From NCBI GenBank assembly GCA_025201805.1, contig MU619374.1:23035-87034 (forward strand): DNA of 64,000 nucleotides, written 5' to 3'. The notes under the pieces are model-generated. The model was not told the DNA's origin. It ran no database searches and saw nothing but the letters and a program-made list of their open reading frames with translations. The translations under genes were made by a program, and so were the position numbers. This document shows positions 9,641-63,312 of this stretch, piece after piece (within the stretch, counting starts at the first letter, position 1; every line of letters begins with the position of its first letter). The stretch comes from Parasitella parasitica NRRL 2501. Lineage: Eukaryota > Fungi > Mucoromycota.

Positions 9641-10852
9641 TCTTGGACTAATTTCCAGATACGCACGAGACCATCGTCGCCCACTGTGGATAGCCAGTCT
9701 GCATGTTGTTTGCTGGGGAACCATGAAACGCCGTTAATATCATAGACACCGTGAGCATCCTTAAAGGTAGTTGTGTTTTTCCATGATGGCGCATCATCGC
9801 CTGTGGAGGTCTCCGAATCCTGCGCATGATTTCTTTCAGTATGCATGCACGCATGCAATTGAAAAACTCACAGATATCTGCTTACCTTTTCAAAAATACG
9901 AATGCTATTATCGCCACTGACACTTGCAATGTATCCATTCACCTTGGACCATGACACGGAATAGATGCATCTCTCATGGAAGCCCGATAGTGTACAGATG
10001 GTCTTCCATGTTGCCTCTCCGTTGTGTGTTGGGATCCCTTGCGGATTGTCGGGTTTGTACATTTTCCAGATGCGCAGGGTTTGGTCGTCAGAAGCAGACA
10101 CTGTGCCATACTAAACATTAGTAAACGTAACGTAACAAACAACACCTTTGACATTATTGTACCAATTTGGTCTCCATCCGCATTAAAATCGAGCGACCAC
10201 ACAGTAGATGTATGGCCCTCCAGAGTATCGGCACAGTACCAGTCGTCTTCATCCTCCTTCCAAATCTTGATTGTATCATCGTAGCTAGCCGAAGCCAAGA
10301 TCTCCAGCTTGGGATGCCATGCCACCATCTTGACATCTTGTGTATGTTCCTGCAACACACTCAAGCATTCGAAATCGTTGTCTGACTCCACCTCCCAAAT
10401 CCAAACACTTTTATCTCGGCTACATGTCGCCAACAATGCGCCAGTTGAAGACCAGGAAACCGATTTGATTTCATTTTCATGCCCTTCCAAAGTGGCTACA
10501 CATTCCCAGTCGTTGACTCGAGGGTCGTTTTCCCATATTCCAGTAGTGGCATCAAAACTAGCCGTTGCCAACTCATTACCTGTAGGAGACCAGGCAACGC
10601 TGCGGATAGTGCGTTTGTGGGCTCCTCTTAATGTCTCTACGCAATGCCATTCTTCAAAATTTTCAACTGAAGCTGGTTTCCACAGGCGGACGGTTTTATC
10701 ACCCGAGCAAGTTGCCAGTAACGTCTTTGTGGGATGCCAAGAAGCCTGCCAGACTCGGTCTTGATGGCCTGTTGCTCTTTGTCAGTATGGGCAGTCTGCC
10801 AGTATATTTAATTTTTACCTTCCAAGGTAGCGAGTAATTTGAGGTATGGCAT
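9637..10852 (-). CDS. CIA1: Cytosolic iron-sulfur assembly WD40 protein Cia1, multi-exon
   Basis: [69 protein letters not shown]. Confidence 0.95.
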
Positions 10853-11027: not shown

Positions 11028-11940
11028 CCTAGCTTCTTTATGGTTAAATGCGTTTTATAAATGTTTGTATAAACATATAAATCATATGCTGTGTGTGTGT
11101 GTTTTTTTAGGAGGCTTCGAATTACCGTAAAAGCTAAACTTGGATATTAATTTGCTATAGATATACAATTTAATGACATTTCTCCATATTTTCGATAAAG
11201 GAGTAGTCTCCATTTTTTTAATATGAAAATTACTGCAGATTAGCAGCTGCAGGCTTTGTCATATACGGCATCGACCATAAAAAAAAAGCCCGCCAAAACT
11301 TGGTTCAAAATGCCTCCTCATTTTTCCTTGCCCCCCCCCCCCTGAACCCGTATCATTTGATTGATTTTGTCTGAAAGGGGAGCAAAAGATGTATGTGTCA
11401 ATAATAAAGGAGATGCGTGTTCATCATTTTATGAAAGGGGAAAAGGGACTAGTCTTTTTACTCCTTTGACCATAATGAATTGGATGGGGGGATTTTTGCC
11501 CGCGCGATCAAAGAACATAGACAATGACAGACGTGAGCAATTTCATTGTCTTTTAAGAATTATAAACGGCAAGGATCAGCATTAATTAAAACCCTGACGA
11601 TACATACAGCGAATCTTGGCCATCACGACCGTATTAGCGTTTTTTCGTGGGTTTTGCTCGTATAAATTGATGATACACGACTATTTCTCACACAACCTCC
11701 TTACTTTTCTGTTTATACAACACATTCCCTCCTTTTTCAATATTAAGGGGACCACCAACAACAAAAGAGCCATAAATCAATAAAGGCCTTCGTTTTGCTT
11801 CTTTTCTCTTTTTTCCTCTTCTTTTCTCTTTCACTTATCTCCTTGAAATTTAATTTCTGCTGTCAAAACTAGATCAAATTTTTAACCCAAAACGTAAAAT
11901 TTTTAGACATTTTTTACTAGAGAAAATATATGAATAAAAC

Positions 11941-49351: not shown

Positions 49352-52300
49352 TTAATCTGTTTCTTCAGTATGATAGCCACTACGTCTATAGTTGTGAAAG
49401 AAGATTAGTTGAAATATGCACACGATGCTGGACGAAATTCTTACCTCATCTCTGCCAAAACGCGGCGAGCATTTGTCAATTCAGAGTCCAGTTTTAAAAT
49501 CTTTACCTGCTGCTCCATCTCTCTACGCTTGAATTCGTGAACAGACAGCTTGTTGAAATCAATACCAGCAGTTTCACTCTTATTTTGTTCAGCCACAAGG
49601 GTTTTGATTTGCTTGACTAGTTCAGCAGCGGCATCCTTGACACCCTTGGCAGCCATCTCCAGGCGTTCTTGGGTGCGAGACATGAAACTAGACTTGACGC
49701 GAGATGCAGAGACTAATTGGGCAGTGGCAGCAGATACTTCATTTGAAGCAACAATCAGCTGCTCGAGAGAATGTGTCTTGCTAATAACACCATCAGCAGC
49801 TTCTACCAACATGTTGGTAGCAACAGCGACGGCCTTAGCAGCGGAAATCAAACCCTCAGTCCAGCGATTGTGCTTCTTGTAGAAAGCAGCCTTGGATGAA
49901 GAGCCACGGCCTTGAGATACAATCTCTTGCTGCGATGCCGTGGCGCACTTGATCAAATTAGCGATAGCGTTTGTCAAGGCCAGCACTGAGTTCAAAATCA
50001 GTTGATGCACTTGGATATCGGTAGCGGAAAAGGCTGGATTTGCAGGACGACGCATCAAGTCTTGAATTTTGGCAGAGGCTTCTTCGATAGCACGAGCAGC
50101 TCTAGTCATTTCTTGCTCAACAAGATCACCAACATCGCCCTCTGCCATTTTATTCACGTCTGTGGCTCCCGTCAAGATCAAGTCTTCGGTCTTTTGCGAT
50201 AATTTAGTGAGAGCTTCTTGGACGCGCATGTCTCCTTGAATCACAACTTCGGGACGCTGAGCAGGAGGAAGCATCTTGAGATAGGTGGACATCACGCTGC
50301 TGAAATATTGTATACATGATTCAGCAGAACCCTTTCCGAGCTGGACCAATTCCTCGCCATCTTCATCCTTCAAAACAAACTGTGTTATACCCTTGGAATG
50401 CTGAAGTACGTCAATGATGGTGTCAGAGAATTCAAGAGCACGGGTAATAGTGCCAGTGTGGTCGCCAGTGTGGCTGCCATCCAAGAACTTGCTGAAAGCA
50501 GACATGAACTCGACAGATGTAATACTAGCTCTTTCAATCATAGACAGTGCTAATTCGGGTGTCGAGTTTTCGTTGCCATGCGAACCAGGAGCGTCTAACT
50601 CATAAATACTATCGTTGATCTTTTGAACACATGTACTCAGGATACAATCTGTCAAATACGTCAATATTTTTAGATCATTGGTGGATTCTCTGTGTCTGCT
50701 TACCCAAAATCTGATTGAGCTTGTCCGTCTGTGCGTTTATTAAGTGATCAAGTTCCTCTTGCAAATCTTGTTGCTTGTCGTTCTGTCATTGCGTCATAGC
50801 TGTGTTAGATTCCTATCTGTTTCCCTGACATCATCTGTGTAGTCCTACCTGCTGCAACTCGGCGAGTTGCGATAGACATTCGTCCATACCAGCCTGTAAC
50901 ACAGCAATTTCCTCATCCTTCTCCTATCAACATACCGCAAGTTAAGCTTGTGATATATATATATATATATTTATATTTTTGTCTACAGCTCCAAGACACT
51001 ACTTACATGACGGATATGATCTGCTTCGCCTTGCTGGTCCTCGATTTGCTTAAGAAATTCATCAATCAAAGCTTGTTTTTCAATCAAACTGGCCTCCAGC
51101 TCTTGTTTTTCCTTGTTGAACTTGGCTAAAAGGGCACTGACCTCGTCTCCCTTAGACCTGCCCATATTTTGCATTTGATTACGCGCATCGTCCAATTCAC
51201 GACGCAAGCGGTCCATGTCTTCACGTTGATTACCTTGAAGACGAGCCAGTTCATTACGAGCTCTGTCGCGTTCGCGGATCAGATCAGCGAGTTCAATGTT
51301 TTTCGCACGCATGTCAGCTTGAATTCGCTCCAATTTCTCGTTTGCTTCCTGAGCCGAATTTGCCTTGACTTGCAGGGCTTTGTACTTGTTCAACAAATCA
51401 ATGTGTTCCTTTCTTAATTGACTATAGAGCTTGGCCAAAGCTTCGTATTTGGTCTTCCACATCTGGATCTCGTCTATTTATGAAATGTCAAGCCGCAGCT
51501 CTAATAGCCCCTCTTATGCAAAACTTACTTTGAAGAGAACGGATCAATTCATCTTTTGATTGGTCTCTTTGCAACGCATTTGCATTGACAGACGCCAATT
51601 CTTGCTCAAGAGCCTTCACTCTTCTGTCATATTGTTCCAACATCATCTGATTACGTTCAAGTTGGTTACGTCCGTTCAAAAGCTGCATTTCAAGATCGTT
51701 GATTCTACCGTTTTGTTGATTCATCATCTGCTGCCTCATGAGTTCCTCTTGTCTCTGGCGCTCAAGCTCAGCCATTTTTCTTTGTTGGTCCTCATATTCA
51801 CGTTGCTGTTGCAGCTGCATTTGCCTCATTCTTTCCTGCTCGTCTTGTCTTTGCTGAGCTAAGCGGTGCTGTTGCTCGTCGTATTCACGCTGCTGCTGAG
51901 CTTGTTTCTCGGACCAAAAATCAATGACGGGCTCAGGAGACGCTTGGGCTGGAGGAGGAGCCTCAATACGAGCAACTTCAGGACGCTTGGGGAGTTGAGG
52001 CGTGCTGTCATCAATAAGGGATGGTGGGTCGGGAGACAGCTTGGGGACATTGATAAGACTCGTCAAGTATTTGAGACTGGAGCACTCGTAGTAAAACTTT
52101 AAAAGTGCGTAATGTTGAGTGTTGAATTTCTGTCTCAAAGGCGCAAGTGCGTCTGAAGCATCGAGCCCTGTTTGCAATAATCATGTAAGTCCGCTATACA
52201 TGTTTTTTGCTTATGCAGGTTAACTTACTTTGATGCATAGCTCTCATCATGCTGGTAATGAATTTATAAATACCATAGCTTTCCTCAACTAAAGGCACAA

Positions 52301-52425
52301 GGGCAGCGATGCGGCACTCGTTGTTGGAGTGATGGCGGAAACTGCCGAAAACAACCTTTTGGAATCTATCGATATGGTCCTGCAATATCATTAAATCATT
52401 GATAGTTTCGAAACTGAGGCAAAGA

Positions 52426-52464
<39 letters not shown>

Positions 52465-53103
52465 GATTTAGTTTTGCGTTGATAGCCGATTAAAGCACTT
52501 TCTTACCCCTCATTAGGATCGTCGATATTCTTCAAACTGATGTACTCCTCATAGTCAAAAGAACCGTTGAACTCGGGATGCGTGCGATGATATTGAAGCT
52601 TGTGCAAAAGAAAGTCGACATAAGCTCGAATAAGGGTGCCGTAACCACGCATACCATCGCCATTCACACTACGAGCACAAGTCTCTAACCAGCTTGTTTC
52701 CCGGAGGGCATCCTTGATTACCTTTTTTTGTGAGCAAAAATATATATTAGTCCTTCTGCCGCGTGCAAAATACAGAAAGGTGCTTGTGATACTCTACGTT
52801 GGCGTGGCCATCCTTGATGACTTTATGGACAAGGATAAGCGCTTTGAATGCTTGGATTTCGTCAGAGAGTAACGGCTGCACTTTCAATATATTCCAAATG
52901 ATGGCCGAGGTTCGATGATCCCAAGTGTATACGATACATTCTGCAGCACATTTTTTCCTTGCATTAGTATCTTGCTTTTATCCAGGCATAGTATACTCAC
53001 TTCGCACATGCTTTTGCTTGGGTGCAGTTTCCTCGACGCTGCAAGCCTTCTTGATACTCTGAGCGAGCTCAGTTTCTGCTTTTTCAGCAGATAAATAGGA
53101 CAT
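49352..53103 (-). CDS. SLA2: Endocytic adaptor Sla2/End4 (ANTH, coiled coil, I/LWEQ), multi-exon
   Basis: IKKACSVEETAPKQKHVRKCIVYTWDH, WKTKYEALAKLYSQLR, FYKKHNRWTEGLISAAKAVA, EMEQQVKIL. Confidence 0.96.
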
Positions 53104-53539
53104 TTTTTTTTTTCTTTTTTGGTAGTGCAAAAAGAAGAAAGAGGTTTTACTTCTTTCTCGTTACATTTTCGAATTTATCTGCTTCTGCAATTGAATACCC
53201 GAAGACGATCTTCTCAATATCTTGGTTCTTGTGTGCATAATTCTGCTGCAATCTTGGCTGTATGCACACGATGAAACAAAAATTTCGCTCGAATGGTACT
53301 ATGAAAAGAAAAAATAACAGTAAACGTATGTTTAGAGTAATGAGAAATAGTGCTGCATTAACTTGGCTACATCAACAGTAAACGTTGGTAATCTTTTTTA
53401 ATATAGTATGTCGCTTGTAGCTATACTTTCACAGCATACATTGGAAATTTGCCCAGCAAAGTAAGAGATGACGATCTGTTTAACCGGATAACTGTTTCAT
53501 ATAAATTTAATATACACATTGAGTACGCTGACCTAAACC

Positions 53540-54690
53540 AGCACTTTCAAAGTCATGTATCACACACGCTGATCTTTGTACAGACGTACTATGTCAAGTA
53601 AAACCGCAATATTCGTATTCACAACCCTTTAGCAGATATTGAGCATGTGGATGGAGCTACTTTTATCAAAGTTCTTTTCCATACTCGTAAATTGGCATTT
53701 CAGGTCGAAAATGAAAACCATCAATTCAGCAAACAATTGGCTACTGTTCGATCTCAAGTCTTCTGTGGCGGCGCTCCTATGTCAAACGATGGAATCCTGA
53801 ATAACGGAAACAGATGTGCTCATATTATTGTAGGTACACCTGGCCGGGTTCCATCTGTAGCTCGAAGCAAATATCTAAAATCACCCTCTTCCAATCACTT
53901 TGTACTCGATGAATGCGACAAAACACTGGGGTAGATGAAAATGTGCCAAGGTGTACAAGTCATAATTCCAGCAACATCCATCTTCAAGCATGCCATGGTA
54001 TTCCAGCTACACTGACTTGGAGATAAGTTCCGTGTGCAAATCTCTTAAGCAAGCATTCACGGAAATCTACGATGATGATGAAATAAAATCCAAGACCTAA
54101 GAGTTCTTGGCTTCCTTTTTATGGAATAATAAAAACCCCACGTTCTCGTGCTTCACCTTAATCGGTAGTGATTTCACAAATAACTCTCACACTTTACAAG
54201 TTTACGATAATTCTACATGAAGAACAAAAAAACTTAAAGAATCAAGGGCGGGATTATCTCTTGGATCATCAGAATTCAATCAAGTCTGCATATTCATTCA
54301 TTCTATATCTCACGCCAAAGAATTGAATTGTTTATGAATGATTGCAACTTTTTAAACATTTGAATCCACTGCCAAATGACTCGAGATGAACGTATTGAGC
54401 GCTTTAAATTGTTGAAGTCTTTGAAAAAGCACATTTGAGTAGCTACGGATATCTTTAACGTGGCATCGATTTTGAGCGTGTCATGTAATTAATTACAACA
54501 TGCCTGATAATGCCGAGTCTTATCTGCATCGTGTGGGTTGTGCGGGTCGCTTTGTCTCCAGAGGCCAAAGTGTCATATTTTTAGCCAATGAAAAAGACGC
54601 TTGGTTGTTGAGTGATACTCGATGAGAACGCTTCAAAGATTCATAATTAAACTTTTGCTGGGCACAATTGGTTTCAACACATTGTAATCA
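53540..54690 (+). pseudogene. SUB2: Decayed SUB2/UAP56 DECD-box helicase copy, apparently intronless
   Basis: HTRKLAFQV, HIIVGTPGR, HFVLDECDK, VATDIF, NYNMPDNAESYLHRVGCAGRF occur in order, with many stops and frameshifts and a deleted Walker A. Confidence 0.85.
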
Positions 54691-55182: not shown

Positions 55183-55511
55183 TTACTTGGAATTGTGCTT
55201 CTTTTCCAAAGCCTCTAAGTCTTTCTTGAGAGCAGCAGTGTCCTTTTCTTGCTTGGCCAAGGCTTCACGGATAAGCTTGAGCTTATCGGCATCCTATGGA
55301 AATGTTTAGCATAATGGCGAACATTTTCCCCACACTTTTGATCTCCTGTACTTACGTGAGAACGGGCCCATTGGTTTTCTATGGCTTTTTCTTTTTGGCC
55401 AAAAGAGCCAGATGAAGCAGTAGCACCTTCGCTACCGGTTTGATAAGAAGTGAAGCGTTTAGTTAAACGAACAGACTTGGAGGAAACGCGCTGAACTGAT
55501 TTAAAGAGCAT
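55183..55511 (-). CDS. INH1: Mitochondrial ATP synthase inhibitor IF1/Inh1, two exons
   Basis: SEGATASSGSFGQKEKAIENQWARSH|DADKLKLIREAL; intron about 55295-55355. Confidence 0.85.
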
Positions 55512-57077: not shown

Positions 57078-59188
57078 TTATCTTCGTTGGGTGGTAAGAT
57101 TACTGTTTGTAGCTGTATCAGTAATGGTAGGAAGTACGCCTCTTAATATACTTGTAGCTGTTTCTAATTGCCGGGTTTGATCTTCATTCAAGTTTATGTT
57201 GTTGTCAAATTTCAAAGTATTTATAACAGATGAGATGTTGGCTATACAGCCATCTATTCTGCTATTAGCAGTTTGGGGAGGCAAAGGATTGATAACAGCA
57301 GTATCTCGTGGTGTTCTTTGTACAGTAGATATAAGGATTGGTACTATTAGAACACATTAGCTCGCTAATCTTTGGGTTTTGACTATAGAATATTACATTC
57401 ATATACCATGAGATCTCTACGGCAACGTTTCAACAAATACATATGCTTGCAAGCTGTTTGGTCCCATTGAACGTCTTGACAAGCGCATGACCGCATTTCT
57501 TCATTTTGGACAATAATTTCATAGTGAGCATCTTCTGTTGTGAAAGATTGTATAGCAAACTTGAGAGTTTCGCTGTCGTTGAGCAACTCTACAACCATAA
57601 GCTCAAGAATCGCGACATTGATTGCTTCAGCCGCCATTTCTCTTTGTCGACGTCTTCTTTCATGAGGTCCCATCCTTCCTATATTTAAGCGAATTCTATT
57701 GGTATTCTGGATAAAATCCGGTTCAATATCATTGCAAGGATGTAAATTAAGCGGTCAATACGTCTGTTACGCTTTCTTCCAAGGTATAATGTTTTAGTTG
57801 GTTATGCCAACTTTCAACGAATTTATTGGTCTCCGTGTTTGTGAACATTTGCGGCTGATATGCAGCGCACCAGTGCTGATACTTTCCTTGCGCAAAGTAG
57901 TATGTGTCCATGTAAATCAAGCATTCTGTGTATTGATGGAACATTACGAGAAAATTTATCATTTTGAGGACAAATGCATCTGGACTCTTTTCCCACATCA
58001 TGCTCTTCAACTGTGCAATCATTGCCCTGTGAACTTGTTGACTCTGAGCCGTGCTACACAGCTTAACGGTGTCTCGTATCTTTGCCATCCAAGCTCTTGC
58101 GACGTGAAACAAGCACCATTGGACACTAACTCCAGGAAATACTTTGTTAATGGCACCATGCTCAGTAGCACTGACATCTATTGTAATCTTTTGTAAGTTT
58201 GGCGCGGTAATTTGTTCTTTTACAAAACGTAAAAAGGCTGCTATTGGTTGCATAGAGTGATCAGTTGTGTACATATATGCAACAGGACATCCTGTACCTG
58301 TATACGGATGCTTAATCACAATACTATACCAGATACCTTGGCTGATACTTGTAACGCAGTGGGTTGCATCTAAGCAAATTGATATTGATGTAGACAATAA
58401 TGCTTTTTGCCATGAAGATGCAAAGCCAAAGGTGTAATTATAGTTGAAATCAGTGCCCAGATAGGTAACATATCCTTTTTGCGAAGATAATTCTTGTAGC
58501 CAAAGTTTTATGGACGCTTTCTGGTCTCTTTCTTTCAAATAAAATTTTTCTTAGATTTTTTTTGTAAATGTTGTAAATCTCATCTGCATGAACCATTTGA
58601 TCTCGATGAATCAGGGAAGAAGTCAAATTATCAAGGCCAGCCAGCACTTGATTCTCTGTAATAAACTTATTACAATTCGTCTGGATGGCAATTCTTGTTT
58701 GCCTTTTGCTGATGCCCTCCTTTAATCGTTGCTCAATTAGTTCTCTTTCGATAATGGCAAATGTTGTAAATCATTCAACCCTCCAACATCGTGATTATGT
58801 TCTCCAGTATAAATGAAGGTTGCATAACCAGGATTGTTCTTGTAATAGATTACTTTGAGTTTAGCACTACAATTAATCTTTTCGCTTGGCTTTTGGAGAT
58901 CACGAACAACTCCTGACGCACCCCCTTTGGTGATTGATCCTTCGGCCATCTTATTACGCTTTTCTTCAGCTGATGGCATTCAAAGGCAGCATACCAGAAA
59001 TAGAGACCAACTACCTTTCTTTTTTTGCCAGGTCTTTCGTCGTTGGCAATTACAGTTTCTCTAGCCTTGACTTTTTTTTTTAATCCATTTCACGCCGTAT
59101 AGTGAAACATTATTTCCAATGTCATCTCCCATTCTGATTCAGGAACGGTAAGCTCAGAAGGAATTGGGCGGTATTGATATAAAGTCAT
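57078..59188 (-). mobile_element. Mutator-like (MULE) transposase, frameshifted
   Basis: C.AKLKV..GEHNH DNA-binding domain, CLDATH (D1), ITIDVS (D2), WCLFHV (CxxH), TNKFVESWHNQLK (E), SWIM finger CACQD..ACKH. Confidence 0.9.
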
Positions 59189-59526
59189 TTGTAAATTAAT
59201 AAAGTAAATAAAAAGTATCAAATCTTTGGTAAACAATGAGGCACCAGCTTTAATGTTTATTATTGAATTTCTTTTTCAAGTACGATAGATCTTTTTTTTT
59301 TCTTTCTTGGAAGTGATCTAATACAAGAGTTGAAAATGGCGGTTGATGGGGACGCAGAAATCCTATGGCAACGAACTTTGATCAAAGTTTAAGATGTCAC
59401 CAATTATTTATTCTAAATGCAGCTTATTTCAGGTCGTGCATAATAACAATCGTTAAAAGGAGACAAGTATGCGCTCCTAATTCCTTCCTCCAATTTATCA
59501 CTTTTATTCTTTTTTATTTGAACCAA

Positions 59527-59829
59527 ATGAAAAGCAGATTATATCTCGCCTCTATTATCACTGTATTACTTTGTTTGCTTGGTGTCTATGCTACAACGGA
59601 TCAGTGTGAAGCAAATAAGAAATTTAAAGCGGACGATGGTTGCAATACTTGCCTTTGTCCCGAGAATGGACTTAAAGCTAATGCTCCTTGTACACGACTG
59701 GCCTGTGCTGTTCAAAACGAGCAGACTTGTATACCTGGGGTGAGGTTCATAAAAGTCTGCAACACATGCCTTTGTCCTCGTAGCGGTTTAAAGGCAGAGG
59801 CACCGTGTTCTAAGATGGCCTGCCTTTAG
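59527..59829 (+). CDS. Secreted two-domain pacifastin-type (MEROPS I19-like) serine protease inhibitor
   Basis: Signal peptide MKSRLYLASIITVLLCLLGVYA and two C-x9/11-C-N-T-C-L-C-x3-G-x6-C-[TS]-x3-C domains. Confidence 0.85.
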   Translation: MKSRLYLASIITVLLCLLGVYATTDQCEANKKFKADDGCNTCLCPENGLKANAPCTRLACAVQNEQTCIPGVRFIKVCNTCLCPRSGLKAEAPCSKMACL

Positions 59830-60488
59830 TTTTTTTTACAACAAAGGTTATGCTATAGTTTTTATATACAGTGCCGCCGGCCATTTTGAAAAGTGGTTTC
59901 TGAAAACTAAATTGAAAAATAAATAACTTTTAGCCAAAGAATAGTTGGCTGCATGTTTTCAAATGATTATCGTTTCAAAACTTTACTTTATCTGTTAAGA
60001 AATAAGGCTATTATAGCTTTTCTAAATGTAAGCAATTGTCAGCTCGTACCTTCTCTGTAACGTTGTATTTGACCAATGGTTAGCCGTACCTGTCTATCTA
60101 TTGAGGCTATGCTTATCAGCCTAATTTTATTCATGTATTTTCTGTATCGCAATCCTTCCTGGAAAACAAAGCTTTGAAAAGCGATGTTGAAAACAAAGAG
60201 GTTCTAAATGCTACTATTTTGGACACTTTTGCAAGAGCAAAAGTCAAAGCCATACTACATTCATTCCCCAACAACTACAAGTTCGAAAAGTATTCCACCT
60301 TTCACGACATAAAACCCAATCCTGAATGCCACTACAAGGCCTTTATGAAAATATTTGAAATCTTTGATTCAGAGGAGTTGCGGCAGTTTTCTTGTTATTC
60401 CATACGAACCACGTTCATCCCTTGTTATACGACTCCCGACTTCATGATTATTTATTAAAATATCGCTTATCTTAAAAAACAAGGCAGC

Positions 60489-61437
60489 ACATCCGACTTG
60501 ACATCTCCAAGATGATCGACGAAGATCAAGTTCACTCTATGTTGTAATTTTCTTTTTCCTTTAGTATTATCTCTTTCCTTCTCCTACTTGTCTTTCTATT
60601 TTTTATTACTACTATCAATATAAATTGCGCCCGCCTCTTGGTTACAGTCTCGCTACTTTAATCTACACGGAGCAAACAATAAAAACCTTTAAAAAAAAAA
60701 AAAGAGTATTGACTCCATTGAAGGGCGAGCCCAGTACCTGTTTTCTGTACAAAGATAGGGCAAAATTTTTGAATTGTGTGCGCTTGGCAAAGGTGGGGTT
60801 TGGGTCGAAACAGGGGAAAGTTACTCCAAACAAAAGGCAACCAAGACCAGCAAGACCAATTGCAAGTGCTGAGACTTGGTGGCGGCGCGTTGTCTTGAAA
60901 GCAATGCGGCATTCGGAATTTAAGCAAAGAAATGAACCAGCTGTTCGCTGTATTTTGCCATTGAGAGCAGCCACAAGTTTAGAGAGCTTGTAGAAGCAGA
61001 AAATACACGTTTGCGACGTAATTATGTTTATTTGTTACCAGTGTTGGTGTATAGCGGTCATGTCGCTGCTGTTTCCAGAACCCACCAAATCGTCTGTGCC
61101 CCCTATATGCGAGAGCCGAATCCGTGTCTACGATCACCGACAAACATAATCCGCTTCTCTGCACCAGAACTCTTTCTCTTTCTCTCGTAAGCTGCTAGTC
61201 TGTCAGAATCTTTTTTGTAAGAGAGTTCCAGCCGTCTTCTTCTTTTTGCCATAGATTGACTGTAATAGAATGAGCGCAACAATGCGCGCGCATTAGTGTG
61301 ATGCTAATAGGCTTGCTCCAAACCATCACCTGTTGAGCCGTGATAAAGGCTATTTTTTTTTCCAAGATCCTTTTCCATCTCCAAAACTATGTACCCGTCC
61401 TCTGTGGTCTTTTTTTTTTTTTTTTTTNNNNNNNNNN

Positions 61438-61503
<66 letters not shown>
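60489..61503 (+). mobile_element. 5'-truncated L1-like non-LTR retroelement insertion (Grem-LINE1-like architecture)
   Basis: 15-bp target-site duplication AAAAAACAAGGCAGC at 60474-60488 and 61504-61518, TT|AAAA site, poly-A at 61438-61509, short sense ORF tail IRLDISKMIDEDQVHSML* at the 5' end; contains an N gap at 61428-61437. Confidence 0.72.
60689..61420 (-). pseudogene. C-terminal half of a second TnpB/Fanzor-like ORF, antisense within the retroelement
   Basis: Across frameshifts: LRSFYYS..MAKRRRRLEL..DRLAAYERK..IMFVGDR.HGFGSRI.GHRRFGGFWK..TLVTN(K)HN TSQTCIFC..GSFLCLNSEC..R(H)QVSALAIGLAG, i.e. RuvC-II, zinc ribbon and RuvC-III in order. Confidence 0.72.
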
Positions 61504-61510
<7 letters not shown>

Positions 61511-63105
61511 AAGGCAGCGCAACAAGTGTCAATGTTGGGGCTCTGGAATCAATATAAATAATAAGGCTTTCAAGAATCAAGGAATAAATAAGTCGCTGCA
61601 TTTTCAGGATACTATGGTGACCGATGGTGTGGACGTGTCTTTAATCAAGAAAATTACTCTTACAGATAGAAAAGCCAAAAGTGCTACAATCCAAGACAAA
61701 GCGTGAGGATTCTGAAGATGTTGTAAGATACATGGAAATTCTGACTCAGAAAGAGCTTAATGAAACTAAGAGTAAGTGCGTCTTGATGGATCCCGGAAGA
61801 CGAGACCTACTTTACTGTAGAAAAGAGACAAGCACTGCGCAGAATAAGCCGGTCATGACTTAAAGATGACAAAAACAAAGCTTTTTAAGGCATTACAGAA
61901 TTCTATGGAAGAAGATCAAGCCTGCCTCGGTCCAGTCATCAGGAGCATAGCTCGCAAAGATTAGGTCATCTTCTGTCAATATTGAAGAGTACGAGATGTA
62001 TATCATGATGAGAGTTTTGGTTGAAAAGGTGCTCTGCTAATATTATGGAAACGAAACATTGCAAACAAAGCAAGCTTATTTTTCAAATTACTGCTTTGAA
62101 AAACAAGGTAGATTTGTACTTTGAGGATTTGGATGATGTTAAAAAAATAAAGTTACTTGAGATTGTAGCAAAAATGAACAAGGAAAATTGCGATCAAAGC
62201 AGTTTAAAGCAGCAGGCAAGTTAAACATTACAAAAGCTACAAGCTTTGCTGTTTCGCAAAATGAAGTTCTCTTCCAAAATGTATCATGATCAAGATGATC
62301 TCGGGTTGGTGAAATAACTCAATCATAAATTTGGCTCTGATTCTGTCCCTTTTCAAGGCAAGTAGTCTGCTCCCATCACAAAATAACAAGGGCCAACATG
62401 AAACAAAGGCTTGATCTAAATGCTATTAAAAAAACTGACTCAAAGATTTCTTAATTGACGAATTTAGAACGTCGTCTTTTTTGTCCTCTATGTGAGAGTA
62501 AGTAGGAGAAATTTAAGATAGTGCAAAATCCAAGATCATACAAGGGAAATACTGGGCCTACTGTTCTCTGTCATGGATTACAACGGTAAAAATGATGATA
62601 GCACAAGACATTAGCAACGAGATTCCTAACTGAGCTATTAGATGCACAAACTCTGACTGCTTAGGACAATAAAAGCCAAGATTGTGGAATCGAGATCTTG
62701 CTGCCATACTGAATTCCAAGAACATTCTAACCAGCTTAAGAGAAATAGGATCTAAATTGTTTACTCGCACAAAAACAGAAGAATCTTTCACCAAGTTTAT
62801 TGCGGGATTGTAGTCAATTTTTGGTCAAGATCGCTTGGTCATCTCATACAGGTATTATCATTTTGAAAAGACAATAATCAATCAAGTAACCATCTTATGA
62901 TGCAGCAGGTTTGCGACATTTTGATATTTGTTTCCAAAACGGCTTATACTTGCTAGTTGCACAGTAACTTGAATAAATTCATCTTGAAGGGTTTGTAGCA
63001 ACACGTATCAAATAACACACAATGTTTAAAGACTTTTGCCACGGCAATATACTATCAACTGTTTATTAAGATTGTCGCCAATAAGTTATCCACACAGAAT
63101 CTTAT

Positions 63106-63312
63106 TTATTCGTCTTGAGTGCATTTATAAACACTACAAGCATAGCCTGTACCATCAGGGCTACACAAGCACAAATTGCAGTCAATCCGGAATTCAGTGT
63201 TGGGTTCACACGTCAATGAGGAGAGGTTGTCATGGGAGTCTTCATCTGATAAAGGCATAGAAAAGGCAATGGCGACGAGACTAGCGGCAAATAAGGTAAA
63301 TGTCATTTTCAT
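63106..63312 (-). CDS. Secreted single-domain pacifastin-type protease inhibitor
   Basis: Signal peptide, acidic spacer and CEPNTEFRIDCNLCLCSPDGTGYACSVYKC; TATAAATA about 40 bp upstream. Confidence 0.82.
   Translation of the reverse strand: MKMTFTLFAASLVAIAFSMPLSDEDSHDNLSSLTCEPNTEFRIDCNLCLCSPDGTGYACSVYKCTQDE

Follow-up and report, generated by a model that had tools for sequence, protein, structure and literature searches.

The question raised by this locus is whether a small reading frame in the genome of the fungus Parasitella parasitica specifies a pacifastin, and against whose proteases such an inhibitor would be directed. Pacifastin-like domains have been described in fungi, myxobacteria and CPR bacteria by Rodriguez-Aguilar et al. 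2026 (PMC13388995). Their fungal domains comprise 45 detected by structure only and some detected by both methods, and four fungal models belong to the short 'conventional' class. For non-animal pacifastins, horizontal transfer and deep ancestry were both raised, and it was stated that no non-metazoan pacifastin had been assayed (PMC13388995). A literature search yielded no paper naming both pacifastin and Mucor. The existence of pacifastins outside arthropods, including those of fungi, is already published, and the gene described here, designated gene 1, is an ordinary new pacifastin of the Mucorales. The present analysis adds that the two-gene locus is conserved, that there is evidence of a transcript, that the long-loop subtype also occurs in myxobacteria, and that the P1 residues do not match the S1 proteases of the fungus itself.

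Gene 1 and its predicted signal peptide

Gene 1 is located at 59527-59829 on the plus strand of the window, the term used here for the whole stretch of 64,000 nucleotides that was analysed. It is an intronless open reading frame translated into 100 amino acids with no internal stops. A signal peptide, as claimed in the sequence-only reading, is predicted for residues 1-22 (59527-59592, plus strand), which contain two basic residues and a hydrophobic core (9-residue Kyte-Doolittle mean at most 2.8) and terminate in V-Y-A; cleavage would occur after Ala22. The hydrophobic N-terminus is conserved among the homologues, and the layout is the same in the counterpart from Mucor ambiguus, GAN05532.1, once an upstream ATG is used. 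As deposited, GAN05532.1 (89 aa) begins at an internal Met, and the upstream in-frame ATG leads to a full signal peptide (9959-10270 of the M. ambiguus locus L005).

An in-frame ATG is also present upstream of gene 1, at 59365, which would give an open reading frame of 154 aa. This longer version was rejected: positions 59334-59530 are uncovered in an RNA-like sequencing run, and the ATG equivalent to 59527 is where the M. ambiguus counterpart begins. On both grounds, 59527 is the likely start.

Presence and probable transcription of gene 1

The gene 1 stretch is present in seven sequencing runs from six studies, and two DNA runs match gene 1 and its flanks (59254-60517) with zero differences. 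Along with the synteny in M. ambiguus described below, these matches led us to discard contamination or an assembly artefact as an explanation. In run X7, a single contig identical to the window covers 59569-59896 at a depth of 2152, while the flanking bins have depths of 0 and 1.5. That X7 is RNA is a guess, but the run shows GT-AG joints and empty intergenic bins; contig depth is unsuitable for ranking genes. The contig is transcript-shaped, and gene 1 is probably transcribed. Another run, X10, differs from the window at 534 positions between 55000 and 60900. Of these differences, 508 are C>T and G>A and fall on genes as well as repeats, a pattern that a bisulfite library would produce. Because the differences are of this kind and the locus is present in X10, the word share of 0.00 obtained for this run does not mean that the locus is absent.

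Pacifastin domains and model fold

The mature part of the gene 1 protein contains twelve cysteines in two blocks of six. Domain 1 (59605-59706, plus strand) has the spacing C-x11-C-N-T-C-x-C-x3-G-x6-C-T-x3-C, and domain 2 (59728-59823, plus strand) the spacing C-x9-C-N-T-C-x-C-x3-G-x6-C-S-x3-C. Both fit the pacifastin consensus C-x9-12-C-N-x-C-x-C-x2-3-G-x3-6-C-T-x3-C (PMC2689174), with Ser replacing Thr in domain 2, and the motif scan thereby bears out what had been read from the sequence. The Cys1-Cys2 gaps are 11 and 9 residues, and the loop between Cys4 and Cys5 has 10 residues with Gly as the fourth in both domains. The reactive loops, C-T-R-L-A-C in domain 1 and C-S-K-M-A-C in domain 2, have the canonical arrangement Cys5-x-P1-P1'-x-Cys6. 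The P1-P1' pairs are Arg57-Leu58 and Lys96-Met97, the P1 residues being those named before. With Cys1-Cys2 gaps inside the range of 9-12 and with pacifastin domains only, gene 1 fits the 'conventional' class of PMC13388995.

The domains are connected by a linker of seven residues (59707-59727, plus strand), which lacks a dibasic pair, as had been noted earlier; the sole KK lies within domain 1, between Cys1 and Cys2. The cleavage site of insect-type processed precursors is accordingly missing from the linker, but such a site does not define the family (PMC2689174). Since the linker has no dibasic site, the protein would stay two-headed, like crustacean precursors.

The strict pacifastin motif was found three times in the window, twice in gene 1 and once in a neighbouring gene, compared to no occurrence in 200 shuffled windows. 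The search with Pfam PF05375, which the earlier reading had proposed, matched two stretches of gene 1 with 55.2 bits in total (E 5.7e-15; cut-off 27.9), the single domains reaching 32.3 and 32.5 bits. All PDB sequence matches of the gene 1 protein are pacifastins. The mature protein was modelled with AlphaFold2 from an alignment of 28 sequences, at a mean pLDDT of 82. When each domain of the model was aligned separately using VIA-align, the top 13 rows were pacifastins, with best rmsd values of 1.2-1.6 A over 33-36 residues. Foldseek matches to pacifastins have probabilities near 1.0 and rmsd values of 1.4-1.8 A, with weak E-values of 0.05 or above; the weak E-values and low absolute scores are due to the tiny size of the domains (35 residues). 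The cysteine register and the superposition suggest disulfide pairing 1-4, 2-6 and 3-5 in each domain.

Alternatively, the protein could be a pacifastin-fold module with a binding or structural role, for instance in the wall or matrix, and no inhibitory activity on proteases; it could also be part of a VWC or fibronectin type I domain. Weak profile matches to Fibulin-2, FnI_RECK and VWF (E 0.02-0.04) and matches to FnI and NEL structures point in this direction, as do the acidic P1 residues of many homologous domains from Myxococcota and the fungus Pilaira. However, VWC domains have ten cysteines and each domain of gene 1 has six, and no match to PF00093 (VWC) was obtained in gene 1 at E up to 1. 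Fibronectin type I pairs rank after the pacifastins in VIA-align, with rmsd values of 6-7 A, and both heads carry a canonical basic P1. The VWC and FnI folds were therefore rejected in favour of the pacifastin fold, as the sequence-only reading had it, and a module devoid of inhibitory function is very improbable.

Gene 2 and the genomic neighbourhood

A second pacifastin gene, gene 2, adjoins gene 1 at a distance of 3.3 kb on the minus strand (63106-63312). Its product of 68 aa consists of a signal peptide, an acidic spacer and one domain (63121-63210) with Val-Tyr as P1-P1' pair, which scores 33.3 bits against PF05375. The Cys4-Cys5 loop of this domain is short, with 8 residues, and the domain aligns without gaps to locust-type peptides. 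A possible N-glycosylation site is found at Asn29. Gene 1 and gene 2 were the only pacifastin matches in the genome, the counts being lower bounds.

Both genes are situated among transposon remnants close to the contig end; the fungal housekeeping genes of the window are split by introns. Gene 1 adjoins a decayed Mutator-like (MULE/SWIM/WRKY-FAR1) transposon at 57383-58979 on the minus strand, which shows weak Pfam matches below cut-off and multi-copy depth in the DNA runs. The interval between the genes (60150-62870) contains degraded transposon pieces, in which a motif resembling RuvC is found at about 61780-61815; the pieces of this region that were tested gave no Pfam match. At about 61410-61510, a poly(T)/poly(A) run includes an assembly gap. 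Further upstream, the genes for SLA2/End4 (ANTH, I_LWEQ; 49441-53139, minus strand) and the mitochondrial ATPase inhibitor IATP (55183-55511, minus strand) served as synteny markers. Between them lies a degenerate copy of a DEAD-box helicase, interrupted by stops and frameshifts (53500-54620, plus strand; DEAD match E 2.6e-08), and blastn gave no match to it in the M. ambiguus locus.

The counterpart in Mucor ambiguus

The closest named relative of the gene 1 protein is M. ambiguus GAN05532.1 (UniProt A0A0C9MQG0), which carries the UniProt name 'Pacifastin domain-containing protein'. Both of its domains are listed in the supplement of PMC13388995. The designation of gene 1 as uncharacterised consequently holds at the bench only, fungal pacifastins being published and its syntenic counterpart being contained in the PMC13388995 data and named in UniProt. 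In M. ambiguus, the order of genes is the same: SLA2 and IATP are followed by the two-domain gene and then by a one-domain gene on the opposite strand. This synteny agrees with the fungal origin assumed for gene 1. The two-domain proteins also have in common the signal peptide, two long-loop domains and about 52-57% identity. They differ in the P1-P1' pairs, which are Leu-Met and Arg-Met in M. ambiguus versus Arg-Leu and Lys-Met in gene 1, and in the Cys1-Cys2 gap of domain 2 (11 versus 9). Domain 1 of gene 1 groups with domain 2 of GAN05532.1, which tentatively suggests domain turnover between the two genes. The counterpart of gene 2 is found at L005 17174-17263 (minus strand) in the same relative place and orientation, with Leu as P1; it is absent from the called genes shown for this locus. 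Since M. ambiguus also has gene 2, the two-gene pacifastin locus is older than the split of both species.

SLA2 has about 81% nucleotide identity and up to 98% amino-acid identity between the window and M. ambiguus. Compared exon by exon, SLA2 and IATP gave dN values of 0.012-0.029. For gene 1, dN is 0.25-0.32, about ten or more times that of the neighbours, and dS is saturated or nearly so. Over gene 1 as a whole, the comparison with M. ambiguus gave no indication of positive selection. Judged by these substitution rates, gene 1 is a fast-evolving gene under purifying selection. The P1 residue differs between counterparts, being Arg, Lys, Leu or Glu.

Relatives and the long-loop subtype

A full HMMER search with gene 1 revealed 182 relatives; a word-indexed protein search, which returned the query alone for both genes, had given a spurious negative. 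The named relatives include the fungi Rhizopus delemar, R. arrhizus, Pilaira anomala and Choanephora cucurbitarum and, outside the fungi, Symbiodinium, the cricket Anabrus, locusts, lice and the wasp venom protein cvp4. Two further loci, L006 and L012, are probably fungal because their neighbouring genes match the genome of the window at 87% and 65%. Both domains of gene 1 are of a long-loop subtype, in which ten residues, P-x-x-G-x-[KR]-x-x-A-x, separate Cys4 from Cys5. This subtype is dominant among the best matches. Many homologues of this subtype have Glu or another non-canonical residue at P1, and part of it may for this reason not inhibit trypsin.

The known systems resemble gene 1 to different degrees. 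The locust peptides SGCI/SGTI and PMP-C/PMP-D2 (MEROPS I19) have the six-cysteine consensus, Asn after Cys2, Gly in the Cys4-Cys5 loop, the reactive loop between Cys5 and Cys6 and a fold superposable on the gene 1 model. In contrast to them, gene 1 has a Cys4-Cys5 loop of 10 residues, two more than the locust-type peptides, and lacks dibasic processing. Long-loop pacifastins of insects (Anabrus, Schistocerca cvp4-like, lice) and multi-domain proteins of Symbiodinium have the 10-residue loop, but are scattered in the tree and are not sister to domain 1 of gene 1. Long-loop repeat proteins of Myxococcota show the same 11-residue Cys1-Cys2 gap with a D-G-C-N motif, the same P-x-x-G-x-[KR]-x-x-A-x loop and up to 61% identity to domain 1. 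They differ in being bacterial, in having up to ten repeats and in their often acidic P1, and the tree does not resolve them as source of the fungal genes. All 18 bacterial loci matching the long-loop pattern stem from metagenome-assembled genomes, mostly of Myxococcota.

Repetition and clustering of domains were observed in several relatives. Three loci from metagenome-assembled genomes of Myxococcota and related bacteria (L015, L017 and L020) contain 7-10 tandem long-loop domains with Lys, Leu and Glu mixed at P1, a number exceeding the 1-3 domains in those bacterial entries of the PMC13388995 supplement that were compared. In Pilaira anomala, four annotated pacifastin genes are clustered (L008, 10001-15931), with one more domain at 11750-11851 outside of called genes; several acidic P1 residues and long proteins with degenerate repeats are found there.

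A tree of 95 domains over 34 columns was largely unresolved. In the phylogeny of arthropod, bacterial and fungal domains that the earlier reading had called for, domain 1 shared a supported group (97/87) with domain 2 of M. ambiguus, with Rhizopus and with the loci of probable fungal origin, and no arthropod origin became apparent. Domain 2 of gene 1 was unplaced. Gene 2 grouped with its counterpart from M. ambiguus, and two insect domains lay nearby. Recent transfer from arthropods is not supported in view of the inheritance within the Mucorales and of a subtype that is common to myxobacteria and dinoflagellates as much as to insects. Gene 1 is a native Mucorales gene, inherited within this order. 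Of the proposal that it is ancient or horizontally acquired, inheritance within the Mucorales stands, but recent acquisition from arthropods finds no support in the tree. Farther back, gene 1 may trace to ancient descent or to an old transfer, both being compatible with the mostly unresolved 34-column tree.

P1 residues and possible target proteases

The specificity of pacifastins is set by P1, the second residue after Cys5 (PMC2689174; PMC13388995). Arg or Lys at P1 is directed against trypsin-like, Leu or Phe against chymotrypsin-like, and Gly, Ala or Val against elastase-like enzymes (PMC2689174; PMC13388995). By these published rules, Arg and Lys in the gene 1 loops fit the trypsin-type targets predicted before. 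K-M, as in the loop of domain 2, is an ancestral trypsin-type P1-P1' pair (PMC13388995).

Two S1-family protease genes with intact catalytic motifs were detected in the genome, an exon-wise count that is a lower bound (G000:C70:132662-133225 and G000:C96:24089-24640, -; loci L013 and L014). Their products are divergent and secreted, and their triad motifs are intact. At the position of Asp189 in the S1 pocket, one has Val versus Asp in kallikrein, and the other has Gly by motif count. Neither of these proteases should be trypsin-specific. In the one at G000:C96:24089-24640, the linker is acidic and a hydrophobic tail at the C-terminus resembles a membrane or GPI anchor. Since both own S1 proteases are without Asp189, the Arg and Lys heads would point to foreign enzymes.

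The inhibitor could nevertheless regulate the fungus's own secreted proteases, subtilisin/kexin-type S8 and the two divergent S1 enzymes, in wall remodelling, sporulation or autolysis. About 26 S8 matches in the genome, in addition to the two S1 genes, lend such an endogenous role some plausibility; gene 1 is apparently transcribed in run X7, and Val at P1 of gene 2 and Leu at P1 of M. ambiguus domain 1 would suit S1 pockets without Asp189. Against it, Arg and Lys misfit both own S1 enzymes, the solved pacifastin complexes that were retrieved are all with S1 enzymes, and P1 varies among Arg, Lys, Leu and Glu, more than one would expect if the inhibitor had a single fixed target within the fungus. 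Regulation of own proteases is thus considered unlikely.

The sequence-only reading favoured an effector or anti-feedant acting on arthropod or competitor proteases. An effector of this kind would block prophenoloxidase activation in insects or the trypsin-like cascades of a vertebrate host. A small, disulfide-rich protein with predicted secretion would suit this role, as would the location in a transposon-rich, fast-changing region and the elevated dN; the parasitoid venom protein cvp4 is a homologue, and engineered locust pacifastins bind MASP-1 and MASP-2. However, the family is spread over mainly saprotrophic Mucorales genera, Mucor, Pilaira and Rhizopus among them, and neither positive selection overall nor an arthropod origin was found. 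An effector directed at hosts or arthropods is accordingly unlikely.

The explanation preferred here, to which we assign a probability of roughly two in three, is that gene 1 specifies a secreted, uncleaved, two-headed serine-protease inhibitor of MEROPS family I19, whose heads act most likely against foreign trypsins. After removal of the signal peptide, each domain of roughly 35 residues would fold on its three disulfides and offer the Cys5-Cys6 loop like a substrate to the active site of a protease. Arg of domain 1 or Lys of domain 2 would then enter the S1 pocket of trypsin-like S1 enzymes, and the neighbouring gene 2 with Val at P1 would add elastase-type specificity. Targets could be trypsins in the gut or body fluids of grazing or host animals, or trypsins of competing microbes.

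Significance of the locus

Gene 1 is short, probably expressed and equipped with canonical P1 residues. It lends itself to testing whether fungal pacifastins truly inhibit proteases, and whose. The link of the long-loop subtype to myxobacteria merits a proper phylogeny. More speculatively, and with a rather low probability, the subtype may have been exchanged between predatory myxobacteria and the lineage leading to the Mucorales, and gene 1 and gene 2 may form a small, secreted, fast-changing shield whose Arg, Lys and Val heads ward off trypsin- and elastase-like enzymes, be they from grazers, hosts or bacterial predators. If this were true, a fungus would for the first time have been shown to turn an insect-type immune inhibitor against animals.
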